NCBI RefSeq assembly: GCF_020745735.1
Contig: NC_083410.1
Coordinates: 3,198,117 to 3,262,116 of the forward strand
DNA from: Hemiscyllium ocellatum
Taxonomy: Eukaryota
Direction: 5' to 3'
DNA length: 64,000 nt
The translations under genes were made by a program, and so were the position numbers. Of this stretch, positions 610-58,704 are shown piece after piece; the stretch's first letter is position 1, and each line of letters opens with the position of its first letter. The notes beneath the pieces were generated by a model that had not been told where the DNA came from, made no database searches, and saw only the letters and a program-made list of their open reading frames with translations.

Positions 610-1490
610 GTGAAGGTCTGTAGCTCAGGTTGAGGTTCTGGATCTACACTTGCTTGCTGAACTGTTTTCTGATATTTCGTCACTGTATTAGGTAACATCA
701 TCAGTCAGCCTCCAGTAAAGTGCTGGTAGTATGTGCCTCTTTCTATTTATGTGCCATGCCTTCTTAAGGTGGGTGATATTATTTCCTGTTCTTTTTCTCA
801 GTGAATGGCAGATGGGGTCCAAATCGATGTGTTTATTGATGGAGTTCCGGTTAGAATGCCAGGCCTCTCGGACGTGTCCTGCATGTCTCTGTTTAACTTG
901 TCGAGGGTCAAGTCAAAGTGGTGTCCTTCTTCGTTTGTAAGCAATGATACTAGTGGCAGTGGGTCATGTCTTTTTGTGGCTAGTTGGTGTTCATGTATCC
1001 TGGTGGCTAGTCGTCTGCCTGTTTGTCTGATGTAGTGTTTGCTACTGTCCTTGCATGGCATTTTGTAGATGACATGCATTTTGCTGGTTGCTTTATTGGT
1101 TCCTTTAGGTTCATTAGTTCTATTTAAGTGTGTTGGTAGGTTTGGGGGGGCTACCATGCCAAGGGGGTCTGAGTAGTCTGGAAATCATTTCAGAGATAGC
1201 TTCGATGTATGGTAATGTGGCTACTGCTTCCAGGCATGCTGTGTCTGCTTGTTTGGGTTTGTTGTTGAGAAATCAGCGGACTGGGTTTATTGGGTACCCG
1301 TTCTTCTTGATTATGCTGCATCTGCATTTTTCTTCTGCTGTTCATAGTTCTTGGATGCTGTGGCTCATTGAAATAATGTACTGATGCAGCTCCACTTGTG
1401 GGGGTTAGGATGATTGCTTCTGTAGCTAAGTATTTCGGCAGTCTGTGATGTTTTCCTGTAGACTGGTTTGAAGTTCTCCAGTAATCTATA
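610..1490 (-). mobile_element. Penelope-like retroelement 3' fragment (GIY-YIG endonuclease plus terminal region with hammerhead motif)
   Basis: VIYKMPCKDSSKHYIRQTGRRLATRIHEH; CTGATGA-GTTAC/GTGAC-GAAA on minus strand at 669-708. Confidence 0.8.
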
Positions 1491-1539
1491 CAGTTTATTC
1501 AGAAAGAACTGTTATCTAATAAAAAAGTACACCGATAAT

Positions 1540-1800
1540 ATCTCAGTGGTTAGCACTGTAGTCTCATAACACCAGAGATTCCAGCCTTGGGTGACTGTCC
1601 GTGATACATTCTCCCCATGTTTATGTGGGTTTCTGCTGGGAGCTCCCATTTCCTCCCACAGTCTAAAGATGTACAGTTAGGTGGATTGGCCTTGGTAAAT
1701 GCACAGTTACAGAAGAGCACAGAAGTGAGAGAGATGCCCTTTGGATAGTCAGTGCAAACTCGATGGGCCGAATGGCCTCTTTCCACACTCTAGGCATTCC
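1540..1800 (+). mobile_element. tRNA-derived HE1-like SINE, degenerate
   Basis: cagtggttagcactg head; tail similar to CR1 3' end. Confidence 0.7.
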
Positions 1801-4800
1801 ATGAACACTGTTCCCAAGACCCGGTATTACATGACAATATCTACGAGACATTTCAGAATTTGTAATACCACTGAAAGACCTCAGTTACGTTACCCAGTTC
1901 CAGGAAATGTCTCAGTTGCATCACAGTTGCTGCAGGCTTGCTCCATCACATGATCACAAACCACGAAGGCCTAAGGCATCCTGAATCACTCAATGCGGGA
2001 GCACAGGAACACCGCGCTCAGACCATCAATAATTACACTGATCGGATTCTTCACGAGAACTATGGAGTTTGATCCCACATCCCCCACTCTTCAAGCTATT
2101 ATCTAAACCACCATGAACCCACAACACAACAGACCGTTTCATGAATCTCTAAGTGCTGTGATTCCAATGTTCTCCTCAAATGTTATCTTTTAAAGTGCAA
2201 GCATTCCTTTCATGACAAATGAAGCAGCTAATCTGTGCACAGAGAGGTCCCGTGAGTTGCAATGAGACAAATGCAGAGTTTAGTACTTATTACAGGCATT
2301 GGTCAGGGGTGAAAATTGACCAGGTTATCATCAGCACTGAGACCTCTTACCCCAACCCTCTCAGCACTACCCAGGAAGTGTCAACACGTGTTCCGTGTTC
2401 AAGTAAGGTTAGAATCCATGAATTTCTGACTTATTGGGAATAGAGATACTTGAGAAATTATTTTCACTGTAGGTGGTTAAGGATTGCTCTGTGATATCTT
2501 CATGGTTATCAAGGCTTAAAATGGAACATCACTGCCTTTGGCTGGTCTGAAAACAGCAAAGACCCAAATTTATCATAGGCGTTATCATAAACATTTCTGC
2601 ACATCGTGTGGTTTCATCACAACCCATCACTGAAAGAATTAAATAAATTTCCCCTTAAAGGCAAATCAGTTTCAGCTAAGTAGGTCCTCACAGACACCTG
2701 ATGCGCTGATTGCTGTCGCTGTTCTGTAATTTTCTATGATTCTGGACTTTCATTACAGTCATCGAGTCAGGGTTCACCTGAAGTGATGCATTTCATTAAC
2801 ACTGCCCTGACACACAGTGGGAACTCAATTCAAATGGAATGAAAGTTCCCTTCCCGAGAGAGAGAGATTAGAGGGCTTCAGATTTGCTCTTGACAGAGTT
2901 CTAGGTCAACGCCAACTCATTCTTGTGTTGCCTCAGATGTCTCGTCCGTGTCGCTTTATTGATGGGAGAGAACCTGCACTGTATTTAAAGCGAAACTATA
3001 TTTAAAGACATGGGACACTGGTCCTGCAACGTCCACTTGGTGCTGGATACAGGAGTTTTAAAAGAGGAAAATTGTAACTTTCCAGTGAAACTGCAGATAT
3101 TTCACTGGATAGGGAATAAATAGGATCTACCAGAACCCTGTTGTGACACCACCTCAATATTATTCTTCTTTAGCTTCAGTTGAAGTGCAGGTATCCAAGC
3201 CAGTTTGTGTCTCACTCCATGATAGTGATGAACTAACCCTATTTGGGTCAAACACAGAAATGTCTGAATCTCTTCATTGGTTCATTGAACAGTCAACTCC
3301 TTTTCTGCACTAAAGCACCACAGATAGAAATCTGGTTTCACAAGAAGCTGGGGCATCATACAGACAACTGTGTAGTCTGTAACCAGTCTTTCCACAAGAA
3401 ACATTTTGTCGTCTGCGGTAATGAACAGACATTTCAGAAAGTATAAAAGCTGACCTACATCAGGGGCTCAAGAAAGCAGTCGGAGCCCATGATGAGTAAA
3501 ACAAAATCTTCCACGATTCCATTACCTTGGGTCCTAGTTTCTATTTGCCACTCCTACTCCTGAGAAGAGAAAGTTTTCCATCCTTGGGCTTACACATGAG
3601 GTCACGCCCAGGGCAAAACCAATCACCATTCTATAACACCCACTCAATCTGACTTCAAGACTTTCCAATGCCAAACTCTTTCACTGTGACACTATCATTC
3701 CCAAACAAGAATATCCCACCACTGTCTTGGCCACCTATTCTATATTCTACCCATCCAGAATGCCACTGTTCTGGTGGTATCATACAGCACCACCCTGAGC
3801 AATCACTGTATTGGTCACTAACTCGTGTAATCTCCAGCCTCCCCAATTTCTCAAATGCAATATTCTCATGTTGGCGTTAGCCCTCCCAGATTCACTGAAT
3901 TGACACAATGGCTATTTGATCCTTCATTCCATTATTTATGGTCATGTCTCAACTGGAACCTTCTTTCGGTATTCCTTGCACACCATTTTTTTCAATCCCG
4001 GCCTCTTTAAACAATTCGTGAGCCCAATCTCTCTCATTGACATTGCTACTGTTTGTTTGATTTTACCTCCGCCAAGTTCTTTGGTGCATTTTAGGGAACA
4101 CAAGCTGTGAAGCTGCTCTATAATTCACAATACAAAGCCAATTTCCCAGCAAGGCAAGGCTGGGTGAGGGTAAGAAAACCCAAGAAGTGGGTCTGATACA
4201 GGAATCTATTCTCAGACACCACAGCTGCCTTTACTGTACTACTCTTTACCCAGCACCTTGCAACTACATAATCTTCATGTCCACAAAGTCCTTAATTAGT
4301 ACTTTTCAATTTACAGGGTCAATTGTAACTCCTTGTCATTATAAGCTAAGCCAGTTCTGTGCTCTTTAAATACAGTATCTGAAAGCAGGGAGTGTACAAA
4401 TCACTTCACCTCACTATTAGCCAGAGAGCCCATGCAAAAGAGTTTTCTCAAAAGTTGTGGTGGATCAGAACTACAGAGGTCTTTTATGTGGTTTCATTAG
4501 AGAGAATCACTTTTCATTAATAGAGGCACAACAGGATATTCTCAGAACTCACGTAAGTTCGGCTGAACCGTACATTTTGTGATTACACAACATGATGAAA
4601 CAGGAACATTTGTGAGCTCATGCATTTTCCTCAAACACAGAAACCAGTGTGTACAATTCTAGAAAGTCACTTCTTGGTAAATAGATTTAACAAGTTTGGT
4701 CATTACCATAAGTAGTTAGCACTGGTGTCTCATAATACTAGAGATTCTAGATGATTGTTTCAATTTCCAAACTAATGCGACAAAATACATCAAAATCATG

Positions 4801-7710: not shown

Positions 7711-7899
<189 letters not shown>

Positions 7900-9013
7900 C
7901 TAGCAGGGAAAGGGGAGGCAAAGAAACAGACAGCAAATCAACCGAGAGAAACAAACAAGAATCCCTGTCTGTGATATCCACCACAAGACAAGAGACTTGG
8001 CGGAACAGGACTAGCCCCATTCCAGAAGAGACTCAGCCAAAGTATGGCTCCCTGCATTGACTTCTTATTAGAGCTGAAGTTACAGAAGGGATTACTGCCC
8101 CAAGCAACCACTGTCTGCCCTTTACAGTGGAATTAATGAATGGCAGCAATCCAGTTTGAGTTGGCTGGCTCTGGAACGGATTTATAATTTGAAGATTTTA
8201 GCACTGCCATTTCAAAACACAATTAACAAAGATCGTTTAGAAACTGCAAACTGCAACAAAACATTTCACTCAGCATAACTCCGAGGAGTTCACAAAAGAA
8301 CATTCAGTTCTGGTGAAAGGTCGTCAACCTGAAACGTTATCTCAGCTTCTCCCTCCACATAATCTGCCAGACTCGCTGAATACTTCCTTTATTCACACCC
8401 AGGGTGTAGGAGTCAACGGCTGGGCCAGCATTATTTTCCCACCCCTAGTTGCCCTGTGAGCAGTTAGTAGCCCACATATAGGCGAGACATCAAGATTTCC
8501 TTCCTTACAGGGAATTAATAAACCAGATGGTTTTTACAGTGATCAATAATGGTGATGTGGTTGCCATCAGACTGGTTTTCATTAATTTCCAGTTTTAAAA
8601 TTTACCAGCTGCCATGGTAAGACGTGAACCCATGTCCTTGGAGTATGAGCCAGGACTCTGGAGTACCAGCCCAGTAACATCCCCACTTTCCTCCTGCCTT
8701 CACTCAGTAGTTCCTGGCTTTATTATAGATCTCCAGCATCCACATTATGCTAGACTCATATGTTACAGATGGGGTTCTTTGGGAATAGAGTTAAAGCACT
8801 GTCTCAGAGGTCTGATCCATTGGGAGCACAGCACCCCTAATTTCCACTGCATGCCTTCAGAGGTCCAATGTGTAGAACGGATTTCCAGATGCAGAGATCC
8901 ACACAACAATGAGCCCATCGGGGGAGTGGAACCTCTCAGCAGCTCTGGGGCCACACAGCTCAAAGGAAATGTTGGTAAAGCAGAGTACAGAAACATGATT
9001 TAGAACATAATCA

Positions 9014-9451
<438 letters not shown>

Positions 9452-11080: not shown

Positions 11081-11269
<189 letters not shown>

Positions 11270-15605: not shown

Positions 15606-16006
15606 CTATAGGACATGAATACACAGAGGCTTACACAACGCTCAAACAGAGAGGTTTAGTTAGCTTCCTGCTCAGATTCTTTCAAAACAAATACCACTAA
15701 CTTTAGACAGCATTTCCAGACTTCACCACAGCCCAAAGCGAACACCAACGCTCTCCACTGAACCAGGGTTGATCCCCTGGCTTAATGTAAATTGTAGAGC
15801 CGGGGATATGCCAGGCCATGAGGCTGCAGATTGGGTTGGAGTAGAATTGGCTGCTGCTGACAGCTCTCAGTGCCTCAGATCAAAATACGCAAAATCTGTC
15901 CCATGTAACACAGTGGCATTCCCACATGACATGATGGAGGAGAATTCTCAATGTGAAGGTGGTTTCAATCGTACTGATAGTCACAGGCAAATGCCTCTAT
16001 GATGGG

Positions 16007-16139
16007 ATGGTTTCCTGATGAAGGGCTTATGCCCGAAACGTCGAATTTCCTTTTCCTTGGATGCTGCCTGACCTGCTGTGCTTTAACCAGCAACACATTT
16101 TCAACTGTGATCTCCAGCATCTGCAGACCTCATTTTTCA
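16007..16139 (+). mobile_element. Short Penelope-derived element with 12-bp TSD
   Basis: CTCTATGATGGG at 15995-16006 and 16140-16151. Confidence 0.85.
16011..16046 (+). ncRNA. Minimal hammerhead ribozyme motif, family A, intact
   Basis: UUC-CUGAUGA-A-GGGC(UUAU)GCCC-GAAAC-GUC-GAA. Confidence 0.75.
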
Positions 16140-16174
16140 CTCTATGATGGGTGAAGCCAACTGAGGGCAATACG

Positions 16175-16475
16175 ATGTCTTAGTGGTTAGCACTGCTGTC
16201 TCACAGCACCAGCGACCTAGGTTCAATTCCACTGTTGGGCGAGTGTTTCTGTGAAGTTTGAATGCTCTCCCTACGCTTGCACGGGTTTCCTCCAGGTGCT
16301 CTGGTTTCTTCTCTCAGTCCAAGGATTTGCAGTTTAGATGGATTAGCCATGGTGAATGCAGGGTTACAGGGATAGGGTAGGAGGGTGGGTTGGGTGGGAT
16401 GCCATCTGGAGTGTTAGTGTGGACTTGATAGGCCAAATGACCTGCTTCCATGTTATAGAGTTTCTGTAATTCTAA
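16175..16475 (+). mobile_element. HE1-like SINE
   Basis: tagtggttagcactgctg...ggttcaattcc A/B boxes. Confidence 0.75.
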
Positions 16476-18964: not shown

Positions 18965-19275
18965 TAGGTTCCCTACAGTGTGGAAACAGGCCCTTTGGCC
19001 CAACCAGTCCGCACCGACCCTTGGAAGAGTAACCCACCCAGTCCCATTTCCCTCTGACTAATGCACCTCGCACCACGGGCAATTTAGCATGGCCAATTCA
19101 CCTGACCTACACATCTTTGGACTGTGGGAGGAAGCGCACACAGAAACGGGGAGAATGTGCAAACTCCACACAGACAGTCGCCCGAGGCTGGGACTGAACC
19201 TGGGTCCCTGGTGCTGTGAGGCAGCAGTGCTGATCACTAAGCCACCCTGCCACCCCATGAGCCACTGTGCCACCT
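18965..19275 (-). mobile_element. HE1-like SINE
   Basis: same family as 40425, 41760, 61780. Confidence 0.8.
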
Positions 19276-19692: not shown

Positions 19693-20230
19693 CTGTGGAC
19701 ATGAATACAAAAACTTCGTCTGAAATTCCTTCAGCGGCTTCTTTACCATTCAAAAACTCGCGAAAGCAACTGATTAAATCATCATTAGGGACATAACCAT
19801 CTTTGGTGACAGGTGAAAAACATTGCTGGAATCAGAGCAGTAGCCATGGAGACAAAACAAGCAAGAGTTTTGAGTCTTGGTGGCTCTTCATCAAGTGACT
19901 GCTATCAAATTGTACTGACTTGGTTATGTGGAAGGCAGTTTCACCCATGAAAGGGAACGAAATAAAAACAAAATGCTGCATAAACGTGACATGTCTGTCA
20001 GCATCTTCAGAACCACTACTGTTTTTTAAAAATTCATTCATGGGACATGGGCATTACTGGCTGGGCCAGTATTTATGATCCGTCCCTGGTCACCCTTGAG
20101 AAGGTCATGGTGAGCTGCCTTCTTAAACCACTGCAGTCCATGTACTGTAGGTTCTTTTGAATAAGATCAAGTCAGACCCAATGTGTTAACTCATTCTCTG
20201 TACACCCCAGTCCAACGTTGTCCGCATATA

Positions 20231-20465
20231 AAGTTAAAAATCACACAACACCAGGTTATAGTCCAACAGGTTTAATTGTAAGGACACTAGCTTTCGGAGC
20301 GCCGCTCCTTCATCAGGTGGTTGTGGAGGACACAACTGTAAGGCACAGAATTTATAGCAAATATTCTGTGTCTTACAATTGTGTCTTCCACGACCTGGTG
20401 AAGGAGCGGCGCTCCGAAAGCTAATGTCCTTACAATTAAACCTGTTGGGCTATAACTTTTTAACT
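20231..20465. mobile_element. Hairpin Penelope-derived element, family B
   Basis: inverted arms about 20255-20351 and 20363-20456. Confidence 0.8.
20285..20319 (-). ncRNA. Minimal hammerhead ribozyme motif, family B, intact, on the MCM3 sense strand
   Basis: CAC-CUGAUGA-A-GGAGC(GGC)GCUCC-GAAAG-CUA-GUG. Confidence 0.72.
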
Positions 20466-20835
20466 CTACGGAGGCTGAGGGGTGACCTTATAGAGGTTTA
20501 CAAAATTATGAGGGGCATGGACAGGATAAACAGACAAAGTCTTTTCCCTGGGGTCGGGGAGTCCAGCACTATAGGGCATAGGTTTAGGGTGAGAGGGGAA
20601 AGATATAAAAGAGACCTAAGGGGCAATTTTTTCAAGCAGAGGGTGGTACGTGTATGGAATTAGCTGCCAGAGGATGTGGTGGAGGCTGGTACAATTGCAA
20701 CATTTAAGAGGCATTCGGATGGGTATATGAATAGGAAGGGTTTGGAGGGATATTGGCCGGGTGCTGGCAGGTGGGACTAGATTGGGTTGGGATATCTGGT
20801 CAGCATGGACGAGTTGGACCGAAGGGTCTGACTCT
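20466..20835 (+). mobile_element. CR1 LINE 3' end
   Basis: RRLRGDLIEVYKIMRGMDR...FFKQRVVRVWN. Confidence 0.9.
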
Positions 20836-21520
20836 ATATGTGGATGCTGCCAGCCTGCTGACTTCTCCAGCATCCCTGGTTTATATTTCACATCTCTTTG
20901 TACTTTGGTTTCAGCATGATGAGTGAGTAACTGTGAAGGTTTTTAGGAAGCGATAGATACTTGATAAGTAAGAGAGAAGAACTGTTTAAGGGAGTAACTG
21001 AAGAACCAGAGTAATTGGATCAGCTTTGATCTTGCTAAAAGGTAAAGCAGGACTGAGAGACAGAGTGGTCTCTCACTTCTTGTCTGTGAGCTCCATGTAT
21101 AATAATTCATTTCAAACATTCATCTTGAGACAAAGTATGAACAATGAGGACATGAGTCAGGCAAATACCATTGGATGTTGCTTGGCAACAGGGAGGCGGT
21201 ACAGGGACAGAGATCAGAGGCCAAAAGACTGGAGGAAGAGTCACTGGAAGTGAAATGTCAACTCTACTTTCTGCCCACAGATGCTACCAAATGTTTTGAG
21301 TTTCATTAGGAAGTCCTGCAGTAGTTTGTTTCAAATGTCCAGCATCTGCAGTTCTTTGTTTTACCTTATGCCAGGAGACATTCAGATTTCAGGACAAGAG
21401 GGTACTTGAAGTACAAGACAAGTGAGCGGACGGTTGCGGGAGATGGGCAAGGGATGGGGCATGGTAGAGAGCCATGGTTTGGAGTGGGAGAATGAAAGGG
21501 GAGGGGCATGGCTTGTTGTG

Positions 21521-22603
21521 GGGTGCTATGGGGAGGGGATGGTTTGGAGTCTGGGGGGACTATAGGGAGGGATGGTGTGGAATCAGGGGGGCCTATGGGG
21601 AGGGGACAGTGTCGGGGGGGGCTATGGGGAGGGGATGGTGTGGAGTCAGGGGGCTATGGGGAGGGGATGGTGTGGAGTCGGGGGGGCTGTGGGGAGGGGA
21701 TGGTGTGGAGTCAGGGGGCTATGGGGAGGGGATGGTGTGGAGTCAGGGGGCTATGGGGAGGGGATGGTGTGGAGTCGGGGGGGCTGTGGGGAGGGGATGG
21801 TGTGGAGTCAGGGGGCTATGGGGAGGGGATGGTGTGGAGTCGGGGGGCTGTGGGGAGGGGATGGTGTGGAGTCAGGGGGGGCTGTGGGGAGGGGATGGTG
21901 TGGAGTCGGGGGGGCTATGGGGAGGGGATGGTGTGGAGTCACGGGGCTATGGGGAGGGGATGGTGTGGAGTCAGGGGGCTATGGGGAGGGGATGGTGTGG
22001 AGTCACGGGGCTATGGGGAGGGGATGGTGTGGAGTCAGGGGGGCTATGGGGAGGGGATGGTGTGGAGTCGGGGGGCTGTGGGGAGGGGATGGTGTGGAGT
22101 CGGGGGGCTGTGGGGAGGGGATGGTGTGGAGTCGGGGGGCTATGGGGAGGGGATGGTGTGGAGTCGGGGGGCTGTGGGGAGGGGATGGTGTGGAGTCGGG
22201 GGGCTGTGGGGAGGGGATGGTGTGGAGTCGGGGGGCTATGGGGAGGGGATGGTGTGGAGTCGGGGGGCTGTGGGGAGGGGATGGTGTGGAGTCGGGGGGC
22301 TGTGGGGAGGGGATGGTGTGGAGTCGGGGGGCTGTGGGGAGGGGATGGTGTGGAGTCGGGGGGCTGTGGGGAGGGGATGGTGTGGAGTCGGGGGGCTATG
22401 GGGAGGGGATGGTGTGGAGTCGGGGGGGCTATGGGGAGGGGATGGTGTGGAGTCAGGGGGGGCTGTGGGGAGGGGATGGTGTGGAGTCAGGGGGGGCTGT
22501 GGGGAGGGGATGGTGTGGAGTCAGGGGGGGCTGTGGGGAGGGGATGGTGTGGAGTCGGGGGGGCTGTGGGGAGGGGATGGTGTGGAGTCGGGGGGCTGTG
22601 GGG
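21521..22603 (+). repeat. G-rich 32-bp minisatellite in MCM3 intron 1, about 33 copies
   Basis: unit CTRTGGGGAGGGGATGGTGTGGAGTCRGGGGG. Confidence 0.95.
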
Positions 22604-27929: not shown

Positions 27930-27960
<31 letters not shown>

Positions 27961-28285: not shown

Positions 28286-28289
28286 GTTT

Positions 28290-36055: not shown

Positions 36056-37217
36056 TCCACCCTTTTTTGCCAGGCACTTCCAAGTACACCAATCTCAACA
36101 TTAGTAATAGATTCTAAAATCTTACCAATGACTGAGATTTAAAGGCATGTTAACGTGTCGTTAATTTCTAGTTTCCTGTTTTCTGCCTTCTTTCCTTTTT
36201 AAACTGAGTTATTACATTAGCTACTTTCCAGTCCGCTGGGATCTTCCCTGACTCTAATGTTTCCTGAAAGGTCACTACCAATACCTCCACAATGTCCTCC
36301 AAACCCTGAGGATAGTTCTTCTGGGGAGGGGGCGTGGTCTGAGTGATTTATCCTCCTTCAAATGTTTCAGCTCACCCAACCTCCTCCTTAGTGCTGGCCA
36401 TTACACTTGCCTCTGCACCCTGATTCTCTTTAAGTTCTGGTATGCTGTTGGGATCTTCCGCTGTGAAAACTGATGCAAAGTACCTATTTAGTTCCTCTGT
36501 CTTTTCTTAGTTTCCCCATTACTATTACTCCAGCCTCATTTTTCTGTGGTCCAATATCCACTCTTGCCTCTCTCTTACCTTTTAGATGTCTAAAATAAAA
36601 CGTTTTGCATTCTTATATCTCATGAGGTAGCTCAGTGTCATATTTCATCTTGTCTCCCCCCTTATTGCTACTTTAGTTGTCCTGTGCTGATTTTTAAAGG
36701 CTGCCCAATCCTCTGGCTATGCACTAATCTTCACCATACTGTATGCTTTCTCTTTTGCTTTTATGCTGATTTCCTGGCTTCCCTCATCAGCCATGGTTGT
36801 CTCATTCTCCCCTTAGTTTGTTTCTCCTTCCTTGGGATGAATCTCTGCTGTGCCTCCCAAATTACCCCCAGAAACCCCTGCCATTGCTAGCCTGCCATCT
36901 TCCCTGCCAGGGTCCCTCTTCCAAACAATTCTGGTCAGCTCCTCCCTCATGTCTTTGTAGTTATCTTTACTCAACTGTAATCCCGTGACATCTGATTCCA
37001 GCTTCTCCCTCTCAAACTGTAAGGGGAATGTGATCATACTATGGTCACTGACCCCTAGGGATTCCCTCCACTTTAGGCTCCCTAATCATGTCTGCCTCAT
37101 TACATATCACCAAATCCAGACCTGCCTGTTCCCTCGTGGGATCGACCTCAAGCTGCTCCAAAAACCATCTCGTGGACATTCCACAAATTTCTTTTCTTGA
37201 GATCTGCTACCAACCCT

Positions 37218-37578: not shown

Positions 37579-38189
37579 CTGATTTTCCCAGTCCCTGTGA
37601 CTCCTGTGATAGTAAATAAAAACTGAAAGAGCTGCGGACGCTGTAACTCAGAAACTAAAACAGAAGGTGCTGGAATAGCTCAGCAGGTCTGGCAATAGCT
37701 GTAGAGAACAATCTGAGGATGGGTCACCCGACTTGAAACATTAACTCTGATTTCTTTTCACAGAAGCTGTCAGACTTACTGAGCTTTTCCAGCAACCTCT
37801 GTTTTGATTACAGTAATAATGCCTTTCTTACCTACCCTTTATATCTTCTGATTTCGTTTCTTCCCCACATCCTGACTACTGCTGGGAGGCCTGTACGTAA
37901 CTCCCATCAGGGAGTATAGGCCTTTGCATAACTCCCTGTATCCTCAACTCCACCCACACAGATTCTACACCTTCTCACCCTATATTTCTTCTTGTTAATG
38001 ATTTAATTCCTTACGAACAGAGCAACCCACCTCCTCTTTCCTTTCGATGTGATGTGTATCCTTGGATATTCAGTTCCCAACTCTAATCCACTTGCAGCCA
38101 CGTCTCTGTGATATCCACAGAATTGTACCTGCCAATTTCAATCTGTGCTGCAAGCTCATTTCCCTTGTTTCGGATACCCTGTGAATTTA

Positions 38190-40424: not shown

Positions 40425-40725
40425 ATTCCCTACAGCGTGGAAGCAGGCCCTTCGGCCCAACCAGTCTACACTGACTCTCCAAAGAGTAACCCACCCAGAC
40501 CCATTTTCCTCTGACTAATGCACCTAACACTATGGGCAATTTAACATGGCCAATTGACCTAGCCTGCACATCTTTGGACCATGGGAGGAAACCGGAGCAC
40601 CCAGAGGAAATCCACGCAGACACGGGGAGAATGTGCAAACTCCACACATACAGTCACCCGAGCTTGGAATCAAACCTGGGTCCCTGGTGCTGTGAGGCAG
40701 CAGTGCTAGCCATTGTGCCAACGCT
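40425..40725 (-). mobile_element. HE1-like SINE inserted in CR1
   Basis: family sequence. Confidence 0.8.
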
Positions 40726-40910
40726 ATGAGAGTGCCTCTGCGAGAGTGCACTTCAAGTATCTGAAGCAGCTTTGGCCGTCATCTTTAAAGAGGGATGTAC
40801 TTGTATTGGATCCAATTCAGTGAAAATTTGCCAGACTCATTCCAAAGAAGAAGGTCAGTTTTGCCTTATGAGGCTGGGCCGATGTTCATTGGAGTTTAGA
40901 AAAAAAGAGA

Positions 40911-41047
40911 AACATCACACAACGGCAGATTATAGTCCTACAGGTTTATTTAAAAGTACAAGCTTTCGAAGCACTAATCCTTCATCAGGTAACTAGTTAA
41001 CTTTTTAACTTTGTCCACCTCAATCCAACACCGGCACCTCCACTTCG
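40911..41047. mobile_element. Short family-B element in CR1 with about 13-14 bp TSD
   Basis: TAGAAAAAA(A)GAGA at 40897-40910 and 41048-41060; hammerhead core on minus strand at about 40957-40992. Confidence 0.75.
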
Positions 41048-41759
41048 TAGAAAAAAGAGACATGACTTTATTGAACTGCGTAAGATTCTGAGATGACTTT
41101 GCAGTGTGGATGTTGGGAGGATGTTTCCCCTCATTGGAGAATAGTCTAGAACTAGGGACACTGTTTAACCATAAAGAGGTGGAGATGAGGAGGACTCTCT
41201 TCTCTCAGAGAGTCATTAGTCTGTGGAATTCCCTTCAGAGAATGGTGGAGGCAGCATTGCTGAGTACTGTACACTTAAGGATGAGGTAAAGAGATTTTTG
41301 AATGAGTCAAGGTAAAAAGAGGGCTGACAGAAAGTGGAATTCAGCCGCAATTATATTGAATGGCGAAGCAGGGTCAATGGGCTGAATGGCTACACTTGCT
41401 TAATTTACACAATCATAAGAGCTGAAGATGTGCAGCGACATCAGGAGATGTCGTCTCAGGTGACCTATTGTTTTGGAGTTATGTACAGAGCCATAGGGGC
41501 TAGGATTCACCTTCATAAGACCTGTACCTGCCAGAGTCTCCTGGGAGATGGCTCTTAGTAATGCAGGAAGGGAGAGACCTCTGTCACCGAGTGATTGATC
41601 ACACTGTAAGCTGATGTGTGTAACTCTCCAATGATCTGGTGAGTCAGACCTTGTCAAAATTTATTTCTGAACTGGATGGAAGGATGATTATGTGAGTGAA
41701 CTGATACCACTGTGTCATGTGGGGGTTATAGGGGAATGTAGGCTGTTTAAATAAACCAG

Positions 41760-42105
41760 GGCAATACAGTGGCTCAATGGTTAGCACTGCTGCCTCACTG
41801 TGCCAGGGACCCGGGTTTGATCCCAGCCTCGGGTACCTGGCTGTGTGGAGTTTGCACATTCTGTGTGGGTTTCCTTTGCATACTCCAGTTTCCTCCCACA
41901 GTTGAAAGATGTGCAGGTTAGGTGGATTGGCCATGCTAAGTTGTCCGTAGTGTTCAGTAAAGTGTAGGTTCGGTGCATTCATCAGGGGAAATGTTAAGTA
42001 ATAGTGTAGGGGAATGGGTCTGGGTGGAATATCTTTGGTGGGTCGCTGTGGACTTGTTGGACCAAATGGCCTGTTTCCACACTGTAGGGATTTTATGATT
42101 CTAAA
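41760..42105 (+). mobile_element. HE1-like SINE
   Basis: gtggctcaatggttagcactgctgcctca...ggtttgatcc. Confidence 0.8.
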
Positions 42106-43279
42106 TGAGAAACATTTTGACCAATTGAATGTAACGTGGGAAGTGTGAGGCTATTTACTTTGAATCTGAGAAATAGAAACTGGAAACATTTCGTCAAAGT
42201 GACAGACTCGGAGCTGCAGACAATCACTAAGTTTCAAGTGATTGTTGATGCTCATATAGAACATAATCTAAATGGTTCATGACCTCAAGGGGAGCAAGTT
42301 ATTCATCAGTTATCTTATGCTTTGTCCACATTTGGAGTCACTTTTCAATTCTGGACACCACCCTAACAGAAAGGACAAATTACAGACTCACCGAAATGCT
42401 ACAGTGGGCTGAAGGTTTGTTGTACCAATGGGCTGCAGAGATGATTCTTGTATTGGCTTGAAGACTCAATCTTGAATAGTGATCCCATGCAGGACTTTTA
42501 AATAAAAACTGAAATTGTTGGAGAAACTCAGGAGGCCCTCAGTGCCTGACCTGCTGCGCTTTTCCAGCAACACATTTTCAACACTTCTCATTAGCACTTA
42601 CTCAGCACTTAGCTCTCTTTCTTGGCTTATCATTAGCCATCTGTTCGTTTGCCTCACCCTTTGTTTCAGTATCTCTCCAGCCACCATCTCCATGTCCCCT
42701 ATTTATTTCCCCTCACCATCTCTGTTACCAGTAGAAATATCACCTCCTCCAGTGCTCTTTGTTCTGAAGAGAGGTCAGTGGATTCAAAATGTTGATTGTG
42801 CTTCTTTCTCCAGACTTACTGAGTTTCTTCAACAATTTCTGTTTCGGTTTCAGATTTCCAGCATTGACAGTTCTTTGTTTTTAGATTAAGGTGCTTTAAA
42901 TAATCAGGATAGGCAGGGAGACAATTTCCTCTGTTTGGGTAGTCCATATTGGATAGAACTTCACCCCACACAGAGTGACGTGGAAATCTGGGACCTTCTC
43001 TCCCGTAGTGCTGGTGATGACGCTTGCAGGAAGTGCTTAAGACCAGGGTAGGTTCTCATTGTGAAGGCACACAGAACAAAAGCTGGATGGGGGTGATGCT
43101 AAGACCAGGTCCTCCCTGATGGAGCAGGCTGTGGGAAAGAATGGCCTCTCTCTGATGCTGTTAGCATACTGGCACAAAATGGCTTTTATTGAGGGAATGG
43201 GTTTGGCGTTTTAAATAAATGGAAGAAGATGTGGAATTTGGCAGGAAAGTGGGATTGACATCAGCAATGCTGGTTAAAC

Positions 43280-44250: not shown

Positions 44251-44434
44251 CAGTCAGAATGAGCAATGGAATGATGAACCCAAATAGTAATGAATTCAAT
44301 GAACCTTTGTGGAATGGGTTGGGGGATCTGGGGGGGGGGGGGGTGTGGCACGTGGAGGTTTTCAAGGTAGGTCTGTGTCATCAGGTCATTTTAAACTTGT
44401 TTGTTTATCTCTTTCTCTCTGTCAGGTGGTCCAA

Positions 44435-45520
44435 ATGGTTTGTGAAATGAAACTGAAGAATTCCCTTAGCAGCCATGTGGTTGGTGGTATCCTAGAGAGA
44501 CTGAATGCCATCACCATCAACCCCCAGCACATCCTGGAGGAGATTCTACCAAGGGTGCCCAGCACCGTGACTGACAATGACGTGCCCATGCTTTTCCGGG
44601 AGCCCTACATCCACAGTGGCTATCGGCAGGTGGAGCAGGATTGGAAATACTACCTTCTCAGCCTCTTCCAGCAGCACAATGAGGCACTCAATGTCTGGAC
44701 TCACCTGCTGGCTGCTCTGGTGCTTGTGGTCCGTTTCCGAGCATTCCTGGAGACAACCTCGCCATTCCCCACCGTCTACAGCCTCCCACTTTGCTTCTTC
44801 GTGATTGCCTGTGTGACCTACCTGTCCTGCAGTGTGCTAGCCCATCTCTTCCAGTCCAAGTCAGAGCTGGCCCATTACTCTTTCTACTTCCTGGACTATG
44901 TAGGTGTGGGTGCTTACCAATATGGCAGTGCCCTGGCACATTACTATTATTGCATGGAGCCTGAGTGGCACCAGGTGATTCACCCGTTCTTCCTGCCCAT
45001 TGCTGCCATCCTGGGCTGGCTCTCCTGCTTGGGCTGTTGTTTCTCCAAAGTCCACTTCCAGCGACCTTACCCCATCACCCGGAAGGTGTGCCAGATGGTG
45101 CCCGCCTTTCTGGCCTACCTCCTGGACATCAGCCCCATTGTCCACCGGATTGCTACCTGCTGGGTACGGGACTGCACTGACCATGCTGTCTGGTACCACA
45201 CCTGGCAGATCATCCTGTTTGTCATCGCTTCCGGCTTCTTCTCTTACCCAGTGCCAGAGAAATATTTCCCGGGAAGATTCGACATCGTGGGACACGCCCA
45301 CCAGATCTTCCACGTGTTCCTGTCCCTCTGCACGCTAGCTCAGCTGGAGGCTGTGCTGTTGGACTACAGCAACCGGCGGGAGATGTTCTCCACCCGGGGA
45401 GATGAGCGCATGGTCTACATCTCGTGCATGAACTTCATCGTGCTGATCGCCTGCAGCGGCAGCTCAGCCATCTACATGAGGAGAATAGTCAAAAACAAGC
45501 TGCACAAGAAAGGGGACTGA
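44435..45520 (+). CDS. PAQR8: Membrane progestin receptor beta (PAQR family member 8), single coding exon; start is ATG 44435 or 44447
   Basis: ILERL...VPMLFREPYI, HNEALNVWTH, SVLAH, DYVGV, PEKYFPGRFDIVGHAHQIFH motifs, hydrophobic segments, KKGD C-terminus; pyrimidine tract and cAG acceptor at 44425; MCM3-PAQR8 synteny. Confidence 0.93.
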   Translation: MVCEMKLKNSLSSHVVGGILERLNAITINPQHILEEILPRVPSTVTDNDVPMLFREPYIHSGYRQVEQDWKYYLLSLFQQHNEALNVWTHLLAALVLVVRFRAFLETTSPFPTVYSLPLCFFVIACVTYLSCSVLAHLFQSKSELAHYSFYFLDYVGVGAYQYGSALAHYYYCMEPEWHQVIHPFFLPIAAILGWLSCLGCCFSKVHFQRPYPITRKVCQMVPAFLAYLLDISPIVHRIATCWVRDCTDHAVWYHTWQIILFVIASGFFSYPVPEKYFPGRFDIVGHAHQIFHVFLSLCTLAQLEAVLLDYSNRREMFSTRGDERMVYISCMNFIVLIACSGSSAIYMRRIVKNKLHKKGD

Positions 45521-45984: not shown

Positions 45985-46265
45985 TAGAATCCCTATTGGC
46001 AGTGTGGAAACAAGCCATTCAGCCCAACAAGTTCACACTGACCCTCCAAAGAGCATCTCACCCAGACTCACATACCTACCCTCATCATCCTGCATTTCCC
46101 ATGGCCAATCTACCTACCCTACATATCCCAGGAAATTATGGGCAATTTAGCATGGCCATTCCACTCATCCGGCACATCTTTGGACTGTGGGAGGAAACCG
46201 GAGCACCAGGAGGAAACCCACGCAGACACAGGGAGGATGTGCAAACTCTGCACAGACGTCACCTG
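45985..46265 (-). mobile_element. HE1-like SINE downstream of the PAQR8 stop
   Basis: family sequence. Confidence 0.75.
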
Positions 46266-46310
46266 AAAAGTTCAGGTATCCCAAAGGGGGTAAATGGCTA
46301 ACTTTATATC

Positions 46311-47140
46311 AGTGTAGAGTGTAGAGACAGCTTCACTCTGTATCTAACCCCGTACCGCCTCTGTGTTTGATGGGGACAGCGTAGAGGTAGCTTTACTCTG
46401 TATCTAATCCTGTGCTGTATCGGTCCTCAGTGTGTTTAATGCTGACAGTGTAGAGAAAGCTTTACTCTGTATCTAACTCTATGCTATCCCTGTCCTGGGA
46501 GTGTCTGAAGGGGAATGTGCAGAGGTAGCTTTACCTTTAGTTTAAAAGAGTATATGGAGCTTTACTTTATATCTAACCTCATGCTGTACTTGTTTTGGAA
46601 ACATTTGATGTGGACAATGTAGAGGGGGTTTTACTCTGTATCCAGCTCTGTGCTGTCCCTGTCCTGGGAGTGTTTGATAGTGACAGTGTAGAGGTAGCTT
46701 TACTCTGTATCTAACTCCATACTGTTGCTGTCCCGTTAGTGTCTGGTGGGGACAATGTAGAGATCTTTACTCTGTATCTAAATCCTGTACTGTCCCTGTC
46801 CTGGGAGTGTTTGATGAAGACATTGTAGAGGAAACTTTACTCTGTATCTCACTTCGTGCTGACCCTGTCCTGGGAGTGTTTAATGGTGACAATGCAGAGG
46901 GAGCTTTACTCTGTATCTAACCCCATGTTGTCCCTGTCCTGGGAGTGTTTGATCTGTACAGTATAGAGAGAGATTCACTTTATATCTAACCCCTTGCTTT
47001 ACCTGCCCTGGGACTATTTGATAGAAGGGACATTTTAGAAAGAGCTTTATTCTGTACCTAACCCTGTGCTGTCCCAGTCCTGGGAGTGTTTAATCGAAAA
47101 AGAGTGAAGGAAGCTTTACTTTCAGTTTAAAAGGGTAGAA
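46311..47140. repeat. About 69-bp tandem satellite, about 12 copies
   Basis: GTAGAGGGAGCTTTACTCTGTATCTAACCCCGTGCTGTCCCTGTCCTGGGAGTGTTTGATGGGGACAGT-like units. Confidence 0.9.
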
Positions 47141-47159: not shown

Positions 47160-47256
47160 GTAGAAAATGAGGTCTGCAGATGCTGGAGATCACAGCTATC
47201 CTATTCCTTGGATGCTGCCTAACCTGCTGTGCTCTAACCAGCAACACATTTTCAGC
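47160..47256 (-). mobile_element. Internally deleted short Penelope-derived element with 15-bp TSD
   Basis: CATCACTCACTCTGT at 47145-47159 and 47257-47271. Confidence 0.85.
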
Positions 47257-49700
47257 CATCACTCACTCTGTCCCTGTCCTGGAGAGATGCCTGGCTGAAA
47301 TCTGAGTTGACGAGTTATATGAAATGTATGACTGTCTGTATATTTCTTTGTGTAATTTAAAAATACTCAGCAAGTGAAGTGAATTGCAGGGGACATTAAT
47401 GTCAGAGTCCCATTTCTCCTTTTCAGTCTTAAGTATATCTTAAGTAAGTCTTTAATTTATGATCTGTATTAACAATGTAGTACAAGTATCTATTGAAATG
47501 TTGAACCAGCAGGGGAAGGGAAAGTTCATGGAGCATGTTGCACTGTCAAAGGGAATCAGATTCTGAAATCATTTTCATTTCCTTGCTGAGCCTCACTGTT
47601 GGTGGTGATGAAGGGGTATGGTGCCTCATTGAGTGTTGGCAGAGTATAATGATGATTGGTTCATGATGCTGGGAGCTGTGAGGAGCCGATCAGGGTAGAA
47701 TAGATCAGAGAATGGGTTAAAATTGCTGACTGGTGCCTCATTCTTTTTGGCAAGCATGCAGTGATCTGAATCTACTCTCAGTTCATTAGCTACTGACCTT
47801 TCACCAGATCACACCTGATCTATCACCATAATTCCATCAGGAAATTGGGGACACCATGAGGAGAGTATTCAACAAAGATTGGTACCAGTCTCCCCCATTT
47901 CTCTGAGATGTCCCGTTGATCTCTCAGTAAAGTGACAGGAGAATAGCTGTGTAATTCAATAATGCATTTGATGACAATGAATTTATACAGGAGTTACACA
48001 GTCAGGACCCAGAATTAGTAATTCAGTTACAAGCAAACAAGCTGTGTTCAGACACAGATAGGCATAGATGAGATCAGAAAGAATCTTGGAATAACATTAT
48101 ACAGTCATTTTAGGAATAACCCATTTTAGAATTAGCCCACAGATTGCCAGGTTTTTAAAATTAACATCACAGTTTGTAATCACAGGTGTGAGCCTGACAT
48201 CTGGAGTATTATACAATGACCCTTTGTCCATCAGCGTTAATTCAACTGTTTCTGAGCAATTAGTCAGCTTAAAAAAATGCTCATTTATTTTTTAACTCAA
48301 GCATCCCTAGGCACCATACAAATTAATAACATTGAAGGAACTGTACAAGTTAATATTATTGCATCTGCTGCAAATTTTAACAGGTCTATCCATTACACGG
48401 ACCACAGTAGATAAGAGGGGAGAGTGTACACAGGGCTGTGGGAGGGGGTTAAATGGGTGTGCAGAGTCAGTGACAGGGGGAGAATGTCCATGTAATGTGG
48501 GAGGAGGATTAATAGTCTTCCTTATGTTGCAAACAACTCATTAATATGGCATTCAATAAGGTCCCACATGAGAAATTAGCATGTAAATTTAAAGCGCATG
48601 GGATTAGGGGAGGACTTTTGCCCGAAACTTTGATTTTCCTGCTCCTCGGATGCTGCCTGACCTGCTGTGCTTTTCCAGCAACACTCTGATCTAAATTCTG
48701 GTTTCTAGCATCTGCAGTCCTTACTTTGGCCAAACATTTGGGGTACTGTGCTGAAATGGATTGAGGACTGGAAGGAAGAAAGAAAGAGTACAAATACATG
48801 ATCTTCTTCTGAGTGGCAGGCCGTGATTAGTGGGGTGCCATAGAGATCAGTGCTGGAACCCATCTATTCACAATAGAAATGCTTTGGATGAGAAAGCTAA
48901 ATGTATTATCTACAACTTTGCAGGTGACACAAAGCTGGGTGGGAGGGTAAGCTGTGAGGAGGATGCAGAGATGCTTCAATTTGAATTGGACAGGCTGAAT
49001 GTGTGGGCAAATGCATAAAGAGGTAAACAAGTTACTCAAAGATTGGTGTGGGAGAAACGGATTTGAATTCATGGGACATTGGAAGGAGGGAGCTGTTCCA
49101 ATGGGGCAGGCTCCATCTGAATCATGCTGTGATCAGAATCCTTAGAAGTGCAGAGTAAAATAGGTCTGAGTCGGCACATTGTTATCTAGGGGAGACCATG
49201 CCTGACAAATCTGTTCAAATTCTTTGGAGGTAATGAGCAAGTTAGACAAGGGAGAGCTGCAGACATGATCTACTTGGATTTCCAAAAGGCCTTTGACAAG
49301 ATGCTGCAAAGGAGGCTGTTAAATAAGATAAGAGCCGTTGGTATTAGGGACAAGGTACTGGCATGGATAGAGAATTGGCTGACTGGCAGAAGGCAGAGAG
49401 TGGAAATAAAGGAGGCTTTTTCAGGGTGGCTGCCAATGACTAGTGGAATTCCACAGGGGTCAGTGTTGGGACCACAACTATTCACATTATACATTAATAA
49501 TCAAGACAAAGGAACTGAAGGCATTGTTGCTAAGTTTACGAATGACACAAAGATACGTGGAGGGACAGGTAGTGTTGAGGAAGCAGGGAGGCTACAGAAC
49601 AACTTGGACAGGCTGGGAGAGTGGGCAAAGAAGTGGCAGATGGAATACAATATTGCAAAGTGTGAGATTATGCGCTTTGGTAGGTAGAATAGACGTGTAG

Positions 49701-49919
49701 CTGAAAATGTGTTGCTGGTTAAAGCACAGCAGGTTTGGCAGCATCTCAGGAATAGAGAATTTGACGTTTCGAGCATAAGCCCTTCATCAGGAATGAAGGC
49801 CTTAAGCTCGAAACGTCGAATTCTCTATTCCTGAGATGCTGCCAAACCTGCTGTGCTTTAACCAGCAACACATTTTCAGCTGTGATCTCCAGCACCTGCA
49901 GACCTCATTTTTTACTCGA
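49701..49919. mobile_element. Short hairpin Penelope-derived element with 15-bp TSD, inserted in CR1
   Basis: 89-bp inverted arms; AGAATAGACGTGTAG at 49686-49700 and 49920-49934. Confidence 0.9.
49759..49793 (-). ncRNA. Minimal hammerhead ribozyme motif, family A
   Basis: UUC-CUGAUGA-A-GGGC(UUAU)GCUC-GAAAC-GUC-AAAU. Confidence 0.7.
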
Positions 49920-52099
49920 AGAATAGACGTGTAGACCATTTTCTAAATGGGGAAAAGCTTTGGAAATCTAAGGCACAAAGAGACTTGGGAGTTTTAGTTC
50001 AGGATTCTCTTAAAATCAGGTTCAGATGGCATCTAGGAAGGTAAATGCAATGTCAACATTTGTTTCAAGAGGGTTAGAATACAAGAGCAGGGATGTCCTG
50101 CTGAGACTGTGTAAGGCTCTGGTCAGACCACATTTGGAATATTGTGAGCAGTTTTGGGTCCCGTATCTATGGAAGGATGTGCTAGCATTGTTCAGAGGAG
50201 GTTTACAAGAATGATCCTAGAGATAAAGGACTTGTCATATAAGGAGAGTTGAGGATTTGAGGGCTGTACCCGATGGAGTTTAGAAGGATGAGGAAGGAAC
50301 TGATTGAAACTTACAGAATACTGAGTGGGTATGCAAAAGATGATTCCAATGGAGGGGGAGCCAAGGGCACAGTCTCAGGGAAAAGGGATGACCGTTTACA
50401 ACTGAGATGAGGAGGAATTTCTTCAGGAAGTGGGCGGTGAATCTGTGGAACTTAGTGCTGCAGAAGTATGTGGAAGCCAAATCATTGCATGTATTTAATA
50501 TGGATTTAGATAAGTTAAGATCTTAATGGGTTCAAGGGTTATGGGAAGAAGGCAGGAGAACAGATTGAGAAACATATCGGTTGGGAGCAGAAGCAGGAAG
50601 GCATTCTATTTTCTGAATGGTGATAGATTGAGAAAGGGAGAGGTACAAAGAGACTTGAGTGTCCTCATACACCAGTCACTGAAGGTGCAACAGAGGGGGA
50701 AGAAGGTAACTGGCATGTTGTCCATTGTAGGATTTGAGCACAAGAGCAGGGATGTGTTGCTGCAACTCTACAGGAAGGGCAGGACTGATCCATGAAGATA
50801 AACAAGTTCAGCTAGGACTATATTCTCAGGATTTTAGAAGGATGAGGAGGGATCTCATAGAGACCTGTAAAATTCTAACAGGATGACAGGGTAATTGCAG
50901 GAAGGATGTTGCTGATGACTGGGGAGTCCAGAATCAAGGGTCACAGTCTAGGGATACAGGGTAAGCCATTCAGGACTGAGATGAAGAGAAACATCTTTAC
51001 CCAGAGAGTGGTGAGTCTGTGGAATTTGCTGCCATACAAAGCCATTGAGGCCAAAACATTGAATGTTTTCAAAGAGATGCAGGTAAGGGGAGAAAGAAGG
51101 AAAAGGGGACTGGATTGGATGATCAGCCAGGATCATATTGAATGGTAAAGCAAGGTCGAAGGGCTGAATGGCCTTTACATGTCCCTATTTTTAAAATTTC
51201 TACAAAAACCCATTTTCTGAGTTACATTCCTCCAACTACATGATGCCTAGTAACACCAACAGTTCATTCAGCTCTGCAGTCCTTTACAACAACCAGCACT
51301 GACTAGCCCACTTCAAAGAGTCTATAACCACTTGGAGCTGTCAATCAAACTGTTAAATTGGGAGGCAACATGCTGTAATAATGGGAGGATGTGAAATTAG
51401 TCAAGACTCTCTTAGCCAGTTCCCTATGTCAAAAGGAGTTCAAAGGGCAAATATTTTTCAAACTCCAGTTTTCTTTTCAAATAGTTAAATGACAAGACTT
51501 GACTGAACTGCCCTGAGAACTTGACAGTTTCCTTTGACAGTTCTTCTTCACAGCTGTAATGAACGTCACAGTTCCAGTGCATTTACATACCTTTTACACA
51601 CATTGATGCTTTTTTTAACAATCACAAAGAGTAGCGTAGCTATTTTAAAGGAATCTGACCATTGTAAAGAGGTATGTTATCCCCCAGAAAGGGTACCCTG
51701 GCTTTTTAGGCAAATCTGGAATGATCAGAGCTGCTTCTCCTAGGTTTAACTGTGCGTGGCATATTACACACACTGGGTCACACAAGGCTATGGCCTGCTG
51801 CTGCTGCTGCTGATTTCTATCTTTGTCAGCTGTTTCAACTCTCCTTTGATGTAAAGGTGACACCAACCGTAGCTGGATTATTGCTGTGCGACTGGTTTAT
51901 CTGACCAGCAGCCTCTGTGAAATGCATGTGCATGAAATGTGATCTGACCCCTATCCAGATCATGTCTACTCCCACTCATCCACCACATCCCAGTAAAAAC
52001 ATCTGGCAGTGCCACTCCCAGATTATTTAGCCATGTCTGCCATTTTTGCGGCCTATTGCAGTGAAAACACAAGCCCCAAAGTCAGTTTTGTGACATTAT

Positions 52100-57955: not shown

Positions 57956-58030
57956 GTCTGGAGTGTAGACATGATTATGTACTCTGTTGGGGATTTGGAG
58001 CTACAGTCTTCAGGCTGAGAGGTACCAGTG

Positions 58031-58162
58031 AGGTACATTCCTGATGAAGGGCTTACACCCGAAACGTCAATTCTCCTGCTCCTCAGATGCTGCCTGCCCT
58101 GCTATGCTTTTCCAGCACCACACTCTTGACTGACTCTTCAGCATCTGCAGTCCTCACTTTCT
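58031..58162 (+). mobile_element. Short Penelope-derived element with 16-bp TSD
   Basis: CTGAGAGGTACCAGTG at 58015-58030 and 58163-58178. Confidence 0.85.
58037..58072 (+). ncRNA. Minimal hammerhead ribozyme motif, family A, near intact
   Basis: AUUC-CUGAUGA-A-GGGC(UUAC)ACCC-GAAAC-GUC. Confidence 0.65.
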
Positions 58163-58668
58163 CTGAGAGGTACCAGTGTTGGCTAAAGTAATTGAAATGC
58201 ATGATATTAACTCATGCCACCTCAGTCAGTTTCTTGCATGTTATGCAGAAGTTTGCTACTTGGGGATGAATTTGTTATATCCTGGACATAAAAATGGATC
58301 CATTCAACAGTAACAAGCAATGGAATTAAGGCAACAGTGAAGTGTAGTCACATAGATTAAACATTTATCAAATTTTCCAGACAGATACACTAATCAAAGC
58401 CAAGCATAGCGAGCAATAGCAGCACGATGGATAACAGGAAACAATAATGGGAAGTGCAGGAGGGTAAAGCCAGGTGAGGGTTAAATAAGAGACTGTTACA
58501 AAGTGGGTGCTGTCAGGAAACATTTACAGTGAGGGTTCTGGGCTCCATCAAGTTTTATAAATTGGGAAATAAAAATTGAAAGAACTGCAGATGCTGGGAA
58601 TCAGAAACAAAAACTGAAATTGCAGGAAAGGCTCAGCTGGTCTAGCAACACGTGAGGAGAGAAAGCAG

Positions 58669-58704
58669 AATTAATGTTTCGGGTCCAGTGACCCTTCCTC
58701 AGAA
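58669..58704 (-). ncRNA. Minimal hammerhead ribozyme motif, family D
   Basis: CUGAGGA-A-GGGUC(ACUG)GACCC-GAAAC-AUU. Confidence 0.55.

Follow-up and report, generated by a model that had tools for sequence, protein, structure and literature searches.

The stretch analysed here, 64,000 nt of a shark genome (Hemiscyllium ocellatum, contig NC_083410.1, positions 3,198,117 to 3,262,116 of the forward strand; hereafter the window), contains numerous short inserted units with motifs of the minimal hammerhead ribozyme (HHR), which are probably remnants of the terminal part of Penelope-like elements (PLEs). Comparison of the window with itself revealed about 20 HHR-bearing arms and 29 unit fragments, 2490 bp in total. 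The HHR lies at the 5' edge of a unit of 90-130 nt, and the unit occurs either alone or as one arm of a head-to-head fold-back. In the following list the letters A to D denote families proposed in an earlier, model-made interpretation of this DNA (the sequence-only reading); some copies possess a tail at the 3' end, some are bounded by a target-site duplication (TSD), and EN stands for endonuclease.

671-704, minus: family C, a lone minimal HHR reading CUGAUGA-U-GUUAC/GUGAC-GAAAUAUC, with no adjacent helix I and no related copy within the window
8310-8379, plus (D1): decayed family-D unit, core CUGGUGA (A6 to G)
16007-16139, plus (A1): single family-A unit with tail, HHR at 16015-16042 intact; 12-bp TSD CTCTATGATGGG at 15995-16006 and 16140-16151
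20230-20355, minus (B1): left arm of the family-B fold-back; its HHR is intact, runs from 20316 down to 20288 and reads CUGAUGA-A-GGAGC-GGC-GCUCC-GAAAGCUA
20356-20470, plus (B2): right arm of the same fold-back, 87% identical to B1; HHR at 20395-20423 with A6 changed to G
21229-21365, plus (D7): decayed family-D unit with tail
24635-24770, fold-back (D6): decayed family D, minus arm from 24724 down to 24635, plus arm 24727-24770
26944-27152, fold-back (D2): minus arm 26944-27018 without HHR, starting right after the position of the cleavage site; plus arm 27020-27152 with a decayed HHR
32207-32412, fold-back (A2): tail-less minus arm from 32292 down to 32207; plus arm 32293-32412 ending in a tail of about 34 nt; the host sequence is another repeat, duplicated over about 15 bp at the target site (TTGTTGRGCCAAATG)
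35012-35216, minus (A3b): inverted 5'-truncated arm, HHR decayed (C3 to G, G12 to A), no tail
35217-36057, plus (A3): long 5'-truncated PLE copy, with EN frame 35268-35720, a spacer of about 210 nt, HHR 35934-35961, unit body and tail
37615-37805, fold-back (D3): minus arm 37615-37707 without HHR; plus arm 37712-37805 with a decayed HHR and no tail
40904-40990, minus (B3): decayed family-B unit starting at the HHR edge; beside it, at about 41003-41030, a short plus-strand unit end with tail
42760-42876, plus (D4): decayed family-D unit with tail
47160-47256 (A7): inverted family-A tail (47160-47197) joined to a body (47199-47256) that starts about 4 nt after the cleavage site; no HHR
48604-48730, plus (A6): family-A unit with decayed core and a tail
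49701-49917, fold-back (A4): minus arm from 49792 down to 49701 with an intact HHR and no tail; plus arm 49793-49917, cut within the CUGAUGA box, with a 38-nt tail; arms 94% identical; 15-bp TSD AGAATAGACGTGTAG at 49686-49700 and 49920-49934, with an empty paralogous site near 34491-34500
58031-58162, plus (A5): tailed single unit of family A in which one pair of stem II is broken; 16-bp TSD CTGAGAGGTACCAGTG at 58015-58030 and 58163-58178
58568-58702, minus (D5): single family-D unit whose first nucleotide is C3 of the HHR; this HHR is one CpG transition off intact (ACGU to ACAU); 9-bp TSD AAATTGGGA

A strict descriptor of the minimal HHR (CUGANGA, 0-2 nt, stem II with 4 bp or more, GAAA, complementary N and N', U, H) matches five intact copies in the window, at 704 (minus), 16015 (plus), 20316 (minus), 35934 (plus) and 49790 (minus). 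In 200 first-order Markov simulations that keep the dinucleotide frequencies of the window the mean number of such matches was 0.01 and the maximum 1. The other copies carry one to five changes each, many of them CpG transitions (e.g. ACGU to AUGU or ACAU). All 14 places named in the sequence-only reading contain a hammerhead motif; the strand had to be corrected to minus for the motifs at 669, 20285, 40957, 49759 and 58669, whose C3 lies at 704, 20316, 40988, 49790 and 58702, respectively. Copies absent from that reading are those at 35103 (minus), 32289 (minus), 48611 (plus), 21229 (plus), the pair at 24724 (minus) and 24727 (plus), and the truncated one at 49793 (plus). A search of the window with Rfam returned no hammerhead at the gathering score or at E≤10, a silence that is uninformative because these motifs lack the helix III hairpin that the models expect. 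The two N runs (27363-27501 and 27713-27840) are assembly gaps within a GA-rich simple-repeat array (27191-28286), and the blocks flanking them are near-identical to each other; no motif or unit reaches the gaps, the closest being D2, which ends at 27152.

Fifteen copies were aligned from C3 to H17, and the conserved columns of this alignment are the letters of the catalytic core. The boxes CUGANGA and GAAA are exact in five copies, and H17 is C, A or U, never G. An unpaired nucleotide (mostly A) stands between A9 and G10.1 in 15 of 15 copies, and the pair 10.1-11.1 is G-C in 12 of them. There is no helix III hairpin; GAA is followed by a palindrome, A15.1-N-N'-U16.1, which reads ACGU in families A and D, AGCU in family B, and AUAU in family C and in A3. 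The proposal of a minimal PLE-type hammerhead whose helix III is reduced to a 4-nt palindrome is upheld by the core, the extra nucleotide, the G10.1-C11.1 pair and the palindrome. By sequence, the motifs are minimal type I hammerheads of the PLE type, with putative catalytic activity. In the HHR of A3 (35934-35961), AUAU replaces the ACGU of the family through deamination of the CpG on both strands, so the palindrome is kept and this copy still passes the descriptor.

Pairing was counted over stem II and the pairs 15.1/16.1 and 15.2/16.2. In the true register 91.9% of the cells pair, against 75.3% in shuffled alignments (0 of 500 reach 91.9%) and at most 48.6% when the pairing partners are slid. 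Five of the seven pairs are altered on both sides; for helix II the figures are 92.8% of the cells and four of five pairs. The pair 10.4-11.4 occurs in four Watson-Crick types (C-G, U-A, G-C and A-U), and 15.2/16.2, of which 90% of the cells pair, is C-G, G-C or U-A. Kinship within families inflates these counts beyond the number of independent events, and the real signal is in the changes between families, where compensatory replacements confirm the covariation of stem II suggested earlier. The accompanying claim of "at least four families" stands as far as the existence of compensatory families is concerned, but four is generous: families A and D share homology along their entire unit of about 130 nt, and family C is one copy. 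Family B is unrelated to A and D outside the ribozyme.

The units carry clear marks of insertion. TSDs of the single units A1, A5 and D5 and of the fold-backs A2 and A4 are 9-16 bp long, and for the two fold-backs the empty site is seen in an uninterrupted paralogous copy of the host repeat. A search for exact-match TSDs found none for A3, A6, B1/B2, D1, D2, D3 and D4. The head-to-head pairs (A2, A3, A4, B1/B2, D2, D3 and D6) have their heads in the centre and their 3' ends pointing outward, and in A2, A3 and A4 the minus arm stops 30-38 nt short of the extent of the plus arm, so that the tail is one-sided. The motifs are therefore carried by short inserted units, as the sequence-only reading had it, and these units are single arms as well as fold-backs; a one-sided tail combined with an inverted 5'-truncated copy is the signature of PLE insertion. 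In two places, A7 (47160-47256) and the left end of the family-B fold-back (20200-20229), a tail-less arm is adjoined by an inverted tail. The family-B tail, taken as the consensus of contig loose ends (see below), has complements at two sites within the body of the unit, GTTGGACT and CTGGTGTTG; for the family-A tail there is a 7-nt complement only (CAGCATC with GATGCTG), which may be due to chance. RNAalifold applied to whole A and D units recovered stem II and a small GCUG/CAGC hairpin only, and gave no support to a long-range helix between tail and body.

A3 connects the units to a protein-coding element. Its frame 35268-35720 encodes a zinc-finger-like linker, CHRRNCKHC, followed by a motif of the GIY-YIG type (IVYCICCSRCSIVYIGETG...REHL), and the family-A HHR lies about 210 nt downstream. 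This EN was found by reading the translation, and homology searches then agreed. Pfam searches of the window's open reading frames (ORFs) of at least 150 aa gave no reverse transcriptase (RT) or EN at E≤0.01. The best named relative of the A3 frame is a bamboo-shark protein (58% identity). A word-indexed protein search returned one relative only, owing to its length window, whereas an exhaustive search returned 2510, and those of 752-946 aa match the frame at their C-terminus. Of the long relatives, nine were examined with Pfam: GIY-YIG is present in all nine and RVT_1 in seven, some of the hits being below the cut-off; the predicted combination of RT and C-terminal GIY-YIG in these homologs is the architecture of EN+ PLEs. 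With the EN frame directly upstream of the family-A unit, the suggested tie to a Penelope-type RT/GIY-YIG element is supported.

To sample the genome beyond the window, contigs of the same species, from two runs presumed to be DNA, were compared, at a likeness of at least 80%, with positions 35150-36150 (the A locus). This locus is matched by about 128,000 and 108,000 contig pieces in the two runs and family B by about 110,000 and 96,000, in keeping with a very high copy number and with the high-copy system proposed before. The summed depth over the A unit exceeds that of the EN region by a factor of roughly 10 and that of the spacer by a factor of roughly 100, where depth is a rough guide and gives no copy number. 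At 35929 and again at 35930 similarity breaks off in about 750 contigs per run, and the flanks beyond are unlike; these loose ends mark a sharp, shared 5' end 4-5 nt upstream of CUGAUGA. Joints to the opposite strand lie at the HHR edge and connect the unit start with points 11-34 nt beyond the cleavage site. Head-to-tail joints that go back 90 bp were found in 3 and 10 contigs for family A and in 1-3 for family B. The contigs of family B have their 3' end at 20230 and their fold-back joints at the ribozyme edge, and the ribozyme variants present in them at 10% or more are CpG transitions and changes in loop II only. Some contigs join 35717/35718 straight to 35924-35929 and thus omit the 205-211-nt spacer between EN and HHR; such joints are either unit-to-unit junctions of tandem elements or indicate that the spacer is limited to some subfamilies.

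We propose, with a probability of roughly 85%, that the units are dead copies of the terminal module of EN-bearing PLEs, which would belong to at least two lineages, namely A/D (mutually related) and B. The module would consist, in this order, of a minimal type I hammerhead, about 55-60 nt of body, and two 3' end points with a tail of 30-38 nt between them. We infer that the PLE RT starts inside its RNA at two nearby sites, about 60 or 95 nt past the cleavage site, on the nicked target DNA, and that copying would run back through the hammerhead; the units indeed span the uncut ribozyme. A staggered cut would produce the TSDs of 9-16 bp, and priming on both DNA strands could give rise to head-to-head copies, i.e. 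to fold-backs with one tailed arm. Most complementary DNAs (cDNAs) would end at the fixed point 4-5 nt upstream of CUGAUGA, which may be why the units are only 90-130 nt long. A second sense copy is the only partner with which the A-N-N'-U palindrome could pair, and the ribozyme, if active, would therefore work in multimeric transcripts of a master element and not in the scattered copies. After insertion the copies would decay neutrally, mainly at CpG. As the paired copies are inverted and the window contains no direct tandem, the copies here appear to be relics undergoing such decay. Most of them resemble by-products, truncated or run-off, that PLE reverse transcription would leave behind, not members of a separate non-autonomous family, although the shared 5' end leaves the latter open.

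The fixed 5' stop might itself be a real terminus of the RNA or the element, at which the RT runs off. We offer this idea tentatively and consider it rather doubtful: the sharp end would be where the PLE RNA or unit truly begins at its 5' side, with the RT start sites just 90-130 nt away. The contig joints between the EN end and 35929 fit a unit-to-unit junction at that point. If the terminus were true, every transcript, including that of a solo copy, would yield a run-off mini-insertion, and full-length copying would need a transcript of more than one unit, which would explain both the approximately tenfold depth of the unit over the coding region and the need of PLEs for tandem copies.

Several observations weigh against the attribution of the units to PLEs or against parts of the mechanism. 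The Pfam match of the A3 frame to GIY-YIG is below threshold (E 0.016-0.045), the window contains no RT domain and no full-length element, so that the autonomous partner is deduced from a truncated copy and its homologs, and families B and C have no ORF link within the window. Helix I, about 4-5 bp in minimal PLE-type hammerheads, amounts to 2-5 possible pairs, judged by eye, in families A, B and D, where the unit starts just 0-5 nt ahead of the core; in family C no helix I adjoins the cleavage site. Thermodynamic folding of monomers and dimers (minimum free energy and cofold) gave stem II only, with the core paired to the cleavage-site strand, an outcome that is no test of the ribozyme fold. 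Contig depths do not equal copy numbers, the cause given for the sharp 5' end is a proposal, and the RT start sites are read from genomic ends. The loose ends listed (3453 further ends lie outside the list) form no comparable pile at 35961/35962, where cleavage would occur, and a shaping of the copies by ribozyme cutting is thus not visible.

The short units could alternatively constitute a separate, non-autonomous, retrozyme-like family, whose tandem transcripts would cut themselves, be circularised and be copied by the PLE RT, with the monomers as offspring; the sequence-only reading had pointed to such a likeness with non-LTR (long terminal repeat) retrozymes. Animal non-LTR retrozymes (Cervera and de la Pena 2020, PMC7229834; Li et al. 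2026, preprint) do share with the shark units a short, non-coding build with a type I HHR, co-occurrence with PLEs and probable copying by the PLE RT. The units are also discrete on both sides, a few contigs connect the unit end back to the start by the 90-bp joints counted above, and the preprint derives vertebrate retrozymes from the pseudo-LTRs of PLEs and finds monomers to be widespread. These joints are, however, a tiny share of the approximately 1500 boundary contigs per run, and no head-to-tail HHR array occurs among the 36 tandem-repeat rows of the window. Described retrozymes form tandem arrays and abundant RNA circles of 170-400 nt with canonical, efficiently cleaving type I HHRs that have contacts between loop 1 and loop 2 (PMC7229834), whereas the shark units are monomers or inverted pairs of 90-130 nt (monomer 90 nt) with a minimal HHR, whose helix I is open, short and devoid of loop 1. 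Since the paired copies are inverted, one transcript cannot carry two sense ribozymes to dimerise. The unit starts 5' of the ribozyme and not at the cleavage site, the start expected for copies of cut-and-ligated monomers that were opened at random or at that site, and the same family-A unit is contiguous with the EN frame. Two defining features of retrozymes, tandem arrays and a canonical ribozyme, are absent from this window, and we cannot follow the earlier comparison; a separate family of this kind seems unlikely to us, and the rare 90-bp tandem joints elsewhere in the genome leave a small opening for the label.

Inverted arms within direct repeats, together with the lack of a hammerhead in the Rfam output, look at first sight like miniature inverted-repeat transposable elements (MITEs), i.e. 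DNA transposons with a hammerhead-like string in their terminal inverted repeats, or like an ordinary short interspersed element (SINE) with chance matches to the motif. We regard this as very improbable. The TSD length varies from 9 to 16 bp, the arms are unequal with the tail on one side, lone arms (A1, A5 and D5) insert with TSDs of their own, and the heads of the fold-backs meet centrally with the 3' ends outward. Furthermore, the unit is contiguous with the PLE endonuclease frame, one and the same core persists in families B and C, which are unrelated, even as the stems covary, and chance predicts 0.01 matches per window. A MITE or other DNA transposon was accordingly rejected on its unequal arms, TSDs of 9-16 bp and single-arm insertions, and a tRNA-type SINE on the absence of any tRNA-like Rfam match.

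Derivation from PLEs matches a phenomenon described in 2014 (Cervera and de la Pena 2014, PMC4209133) and later extended (Craig et al. 2021, PMC8557442; Frangieh et al. 2024, PMC11167929; the 2026 preprint). Minimal HHRs of PLEs have been described in many animals, with thousands of copies in the coelacanth and Xenopus (PMC4209133). As in the shark, they combine the CUGANGA...GAAA core with an extra nucleotide before G10.1, a G10.1-C11.1 pair, a short helix I and a palindromic 15.2/16.2 without helix III hairpin; there, too, one genome harbours many consensus families with compensatory changes, and most motifs are single and come from truncated PLEs, with opposite-strand pairs 100-700 bp apart. 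The shark units differ in that stem II is 4-5 bp long, against 7-8 bp in Schistosoma, and in that their number is apparently far above that of the systems described in 2014 (more than 100,000 contig pieces per family, which are pieces and not copies). A literature search for PLE hammerheads of sharks found no dedicated description, and one chondrichthyan was sampled by Li et al.; likewise, we have not found a sharp 5' end at the ribozyme edge stated in the literature on PLE hammerheads.

The insertions agree with what is known of PLEs. Published hallmarks of PLE insertion are strong truncation at the 5' side, an inverted truncated copy next to the element and a tail of 30-40 bp at one end only (PMC8557442). 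They are explained by RT starts at two nearby internal sites, as shown for a PLE from Anolis on nicked target DNA, and by priming on both DNA strands (PMC11167929). The shark copies share with these systems the fold-backs with central heads, the 30-38-nt tail at one end, two 3' end points, an HHR about 60-100 nt upstream of the end points, copies that span the uncut ribozyme, and a copy beside a microsatellite. The linker CHRRNCKHC of A3 fits the CX2-5CxxC pattern of the Neptune and Nematis clades (PMC8557442). In Poseidon from Anolis the ORF starts inside the HHR, whereas the shark frame through the HHR stops after 17 codons; in the shark copies the HHR lies downstream of the EN domain, at a distance of 0 or about 210 nt depending on the copy. 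As to target choice, the D2 fold-back lies 40 bp from the GA-rich microsatellite 27191-28286, the array with both assembly gaps, and PLEs with the CX2-5CxxC linker have been reported to prefer microsatellite targets.

Much of the apparent ribozyme system in this shark genome is thus probably debris of Penelope-like retrotransposition, and genome annotation should accordingly mask such units as PLE ends instead of recording them as ribozyme genes. In sharks, the stock of PLE terminal modules appears to be unusually large and old. The start and stop of the PLE RT have so far been measured in one lizard element only, and the clean-bounded copies with TSDs, with their sharp 5' end, two 3' end points and fold-backs, could provide a record of both.

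The window has further features. At 44309-45520 (plus) an uninterrupted frame of 403 aa contains a full Haemolysin-III/PAQR domain (Pfam HlyIII, E 1.6e-54) and is probably an intronless gene, or a retrogene, of a PAQR-family receptor. A repeat of about 270 bp that bears no relation to the hammerhead units is interspersed in at least eight copies, one of which is split by the A2 fold-back:

16183-16458: copy of the repeat
31951-32205 plus 32415-32459: copy split by A2
40430-40712: copy of the repeat
61786-62049: copy of the repeat
41758-42079: copy of the repeat
46016-46266: copy of the repeat
19077-19244: copy of the repeat
1538-1785: copy of the repeat

Minisatellites occupy 21498-22603, 22903-23468, 30606-31730, 46556-47091 and 61187-61590; their types are a G-rich 32-bp unit repeated 34 times, a C-rich 19/94-bp unit, and units of 24/72 bp, 69 bp and 60/117 bp. 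These arrays account for the long ORFs that are open in all frames and for the peaks of GC skew in the window.

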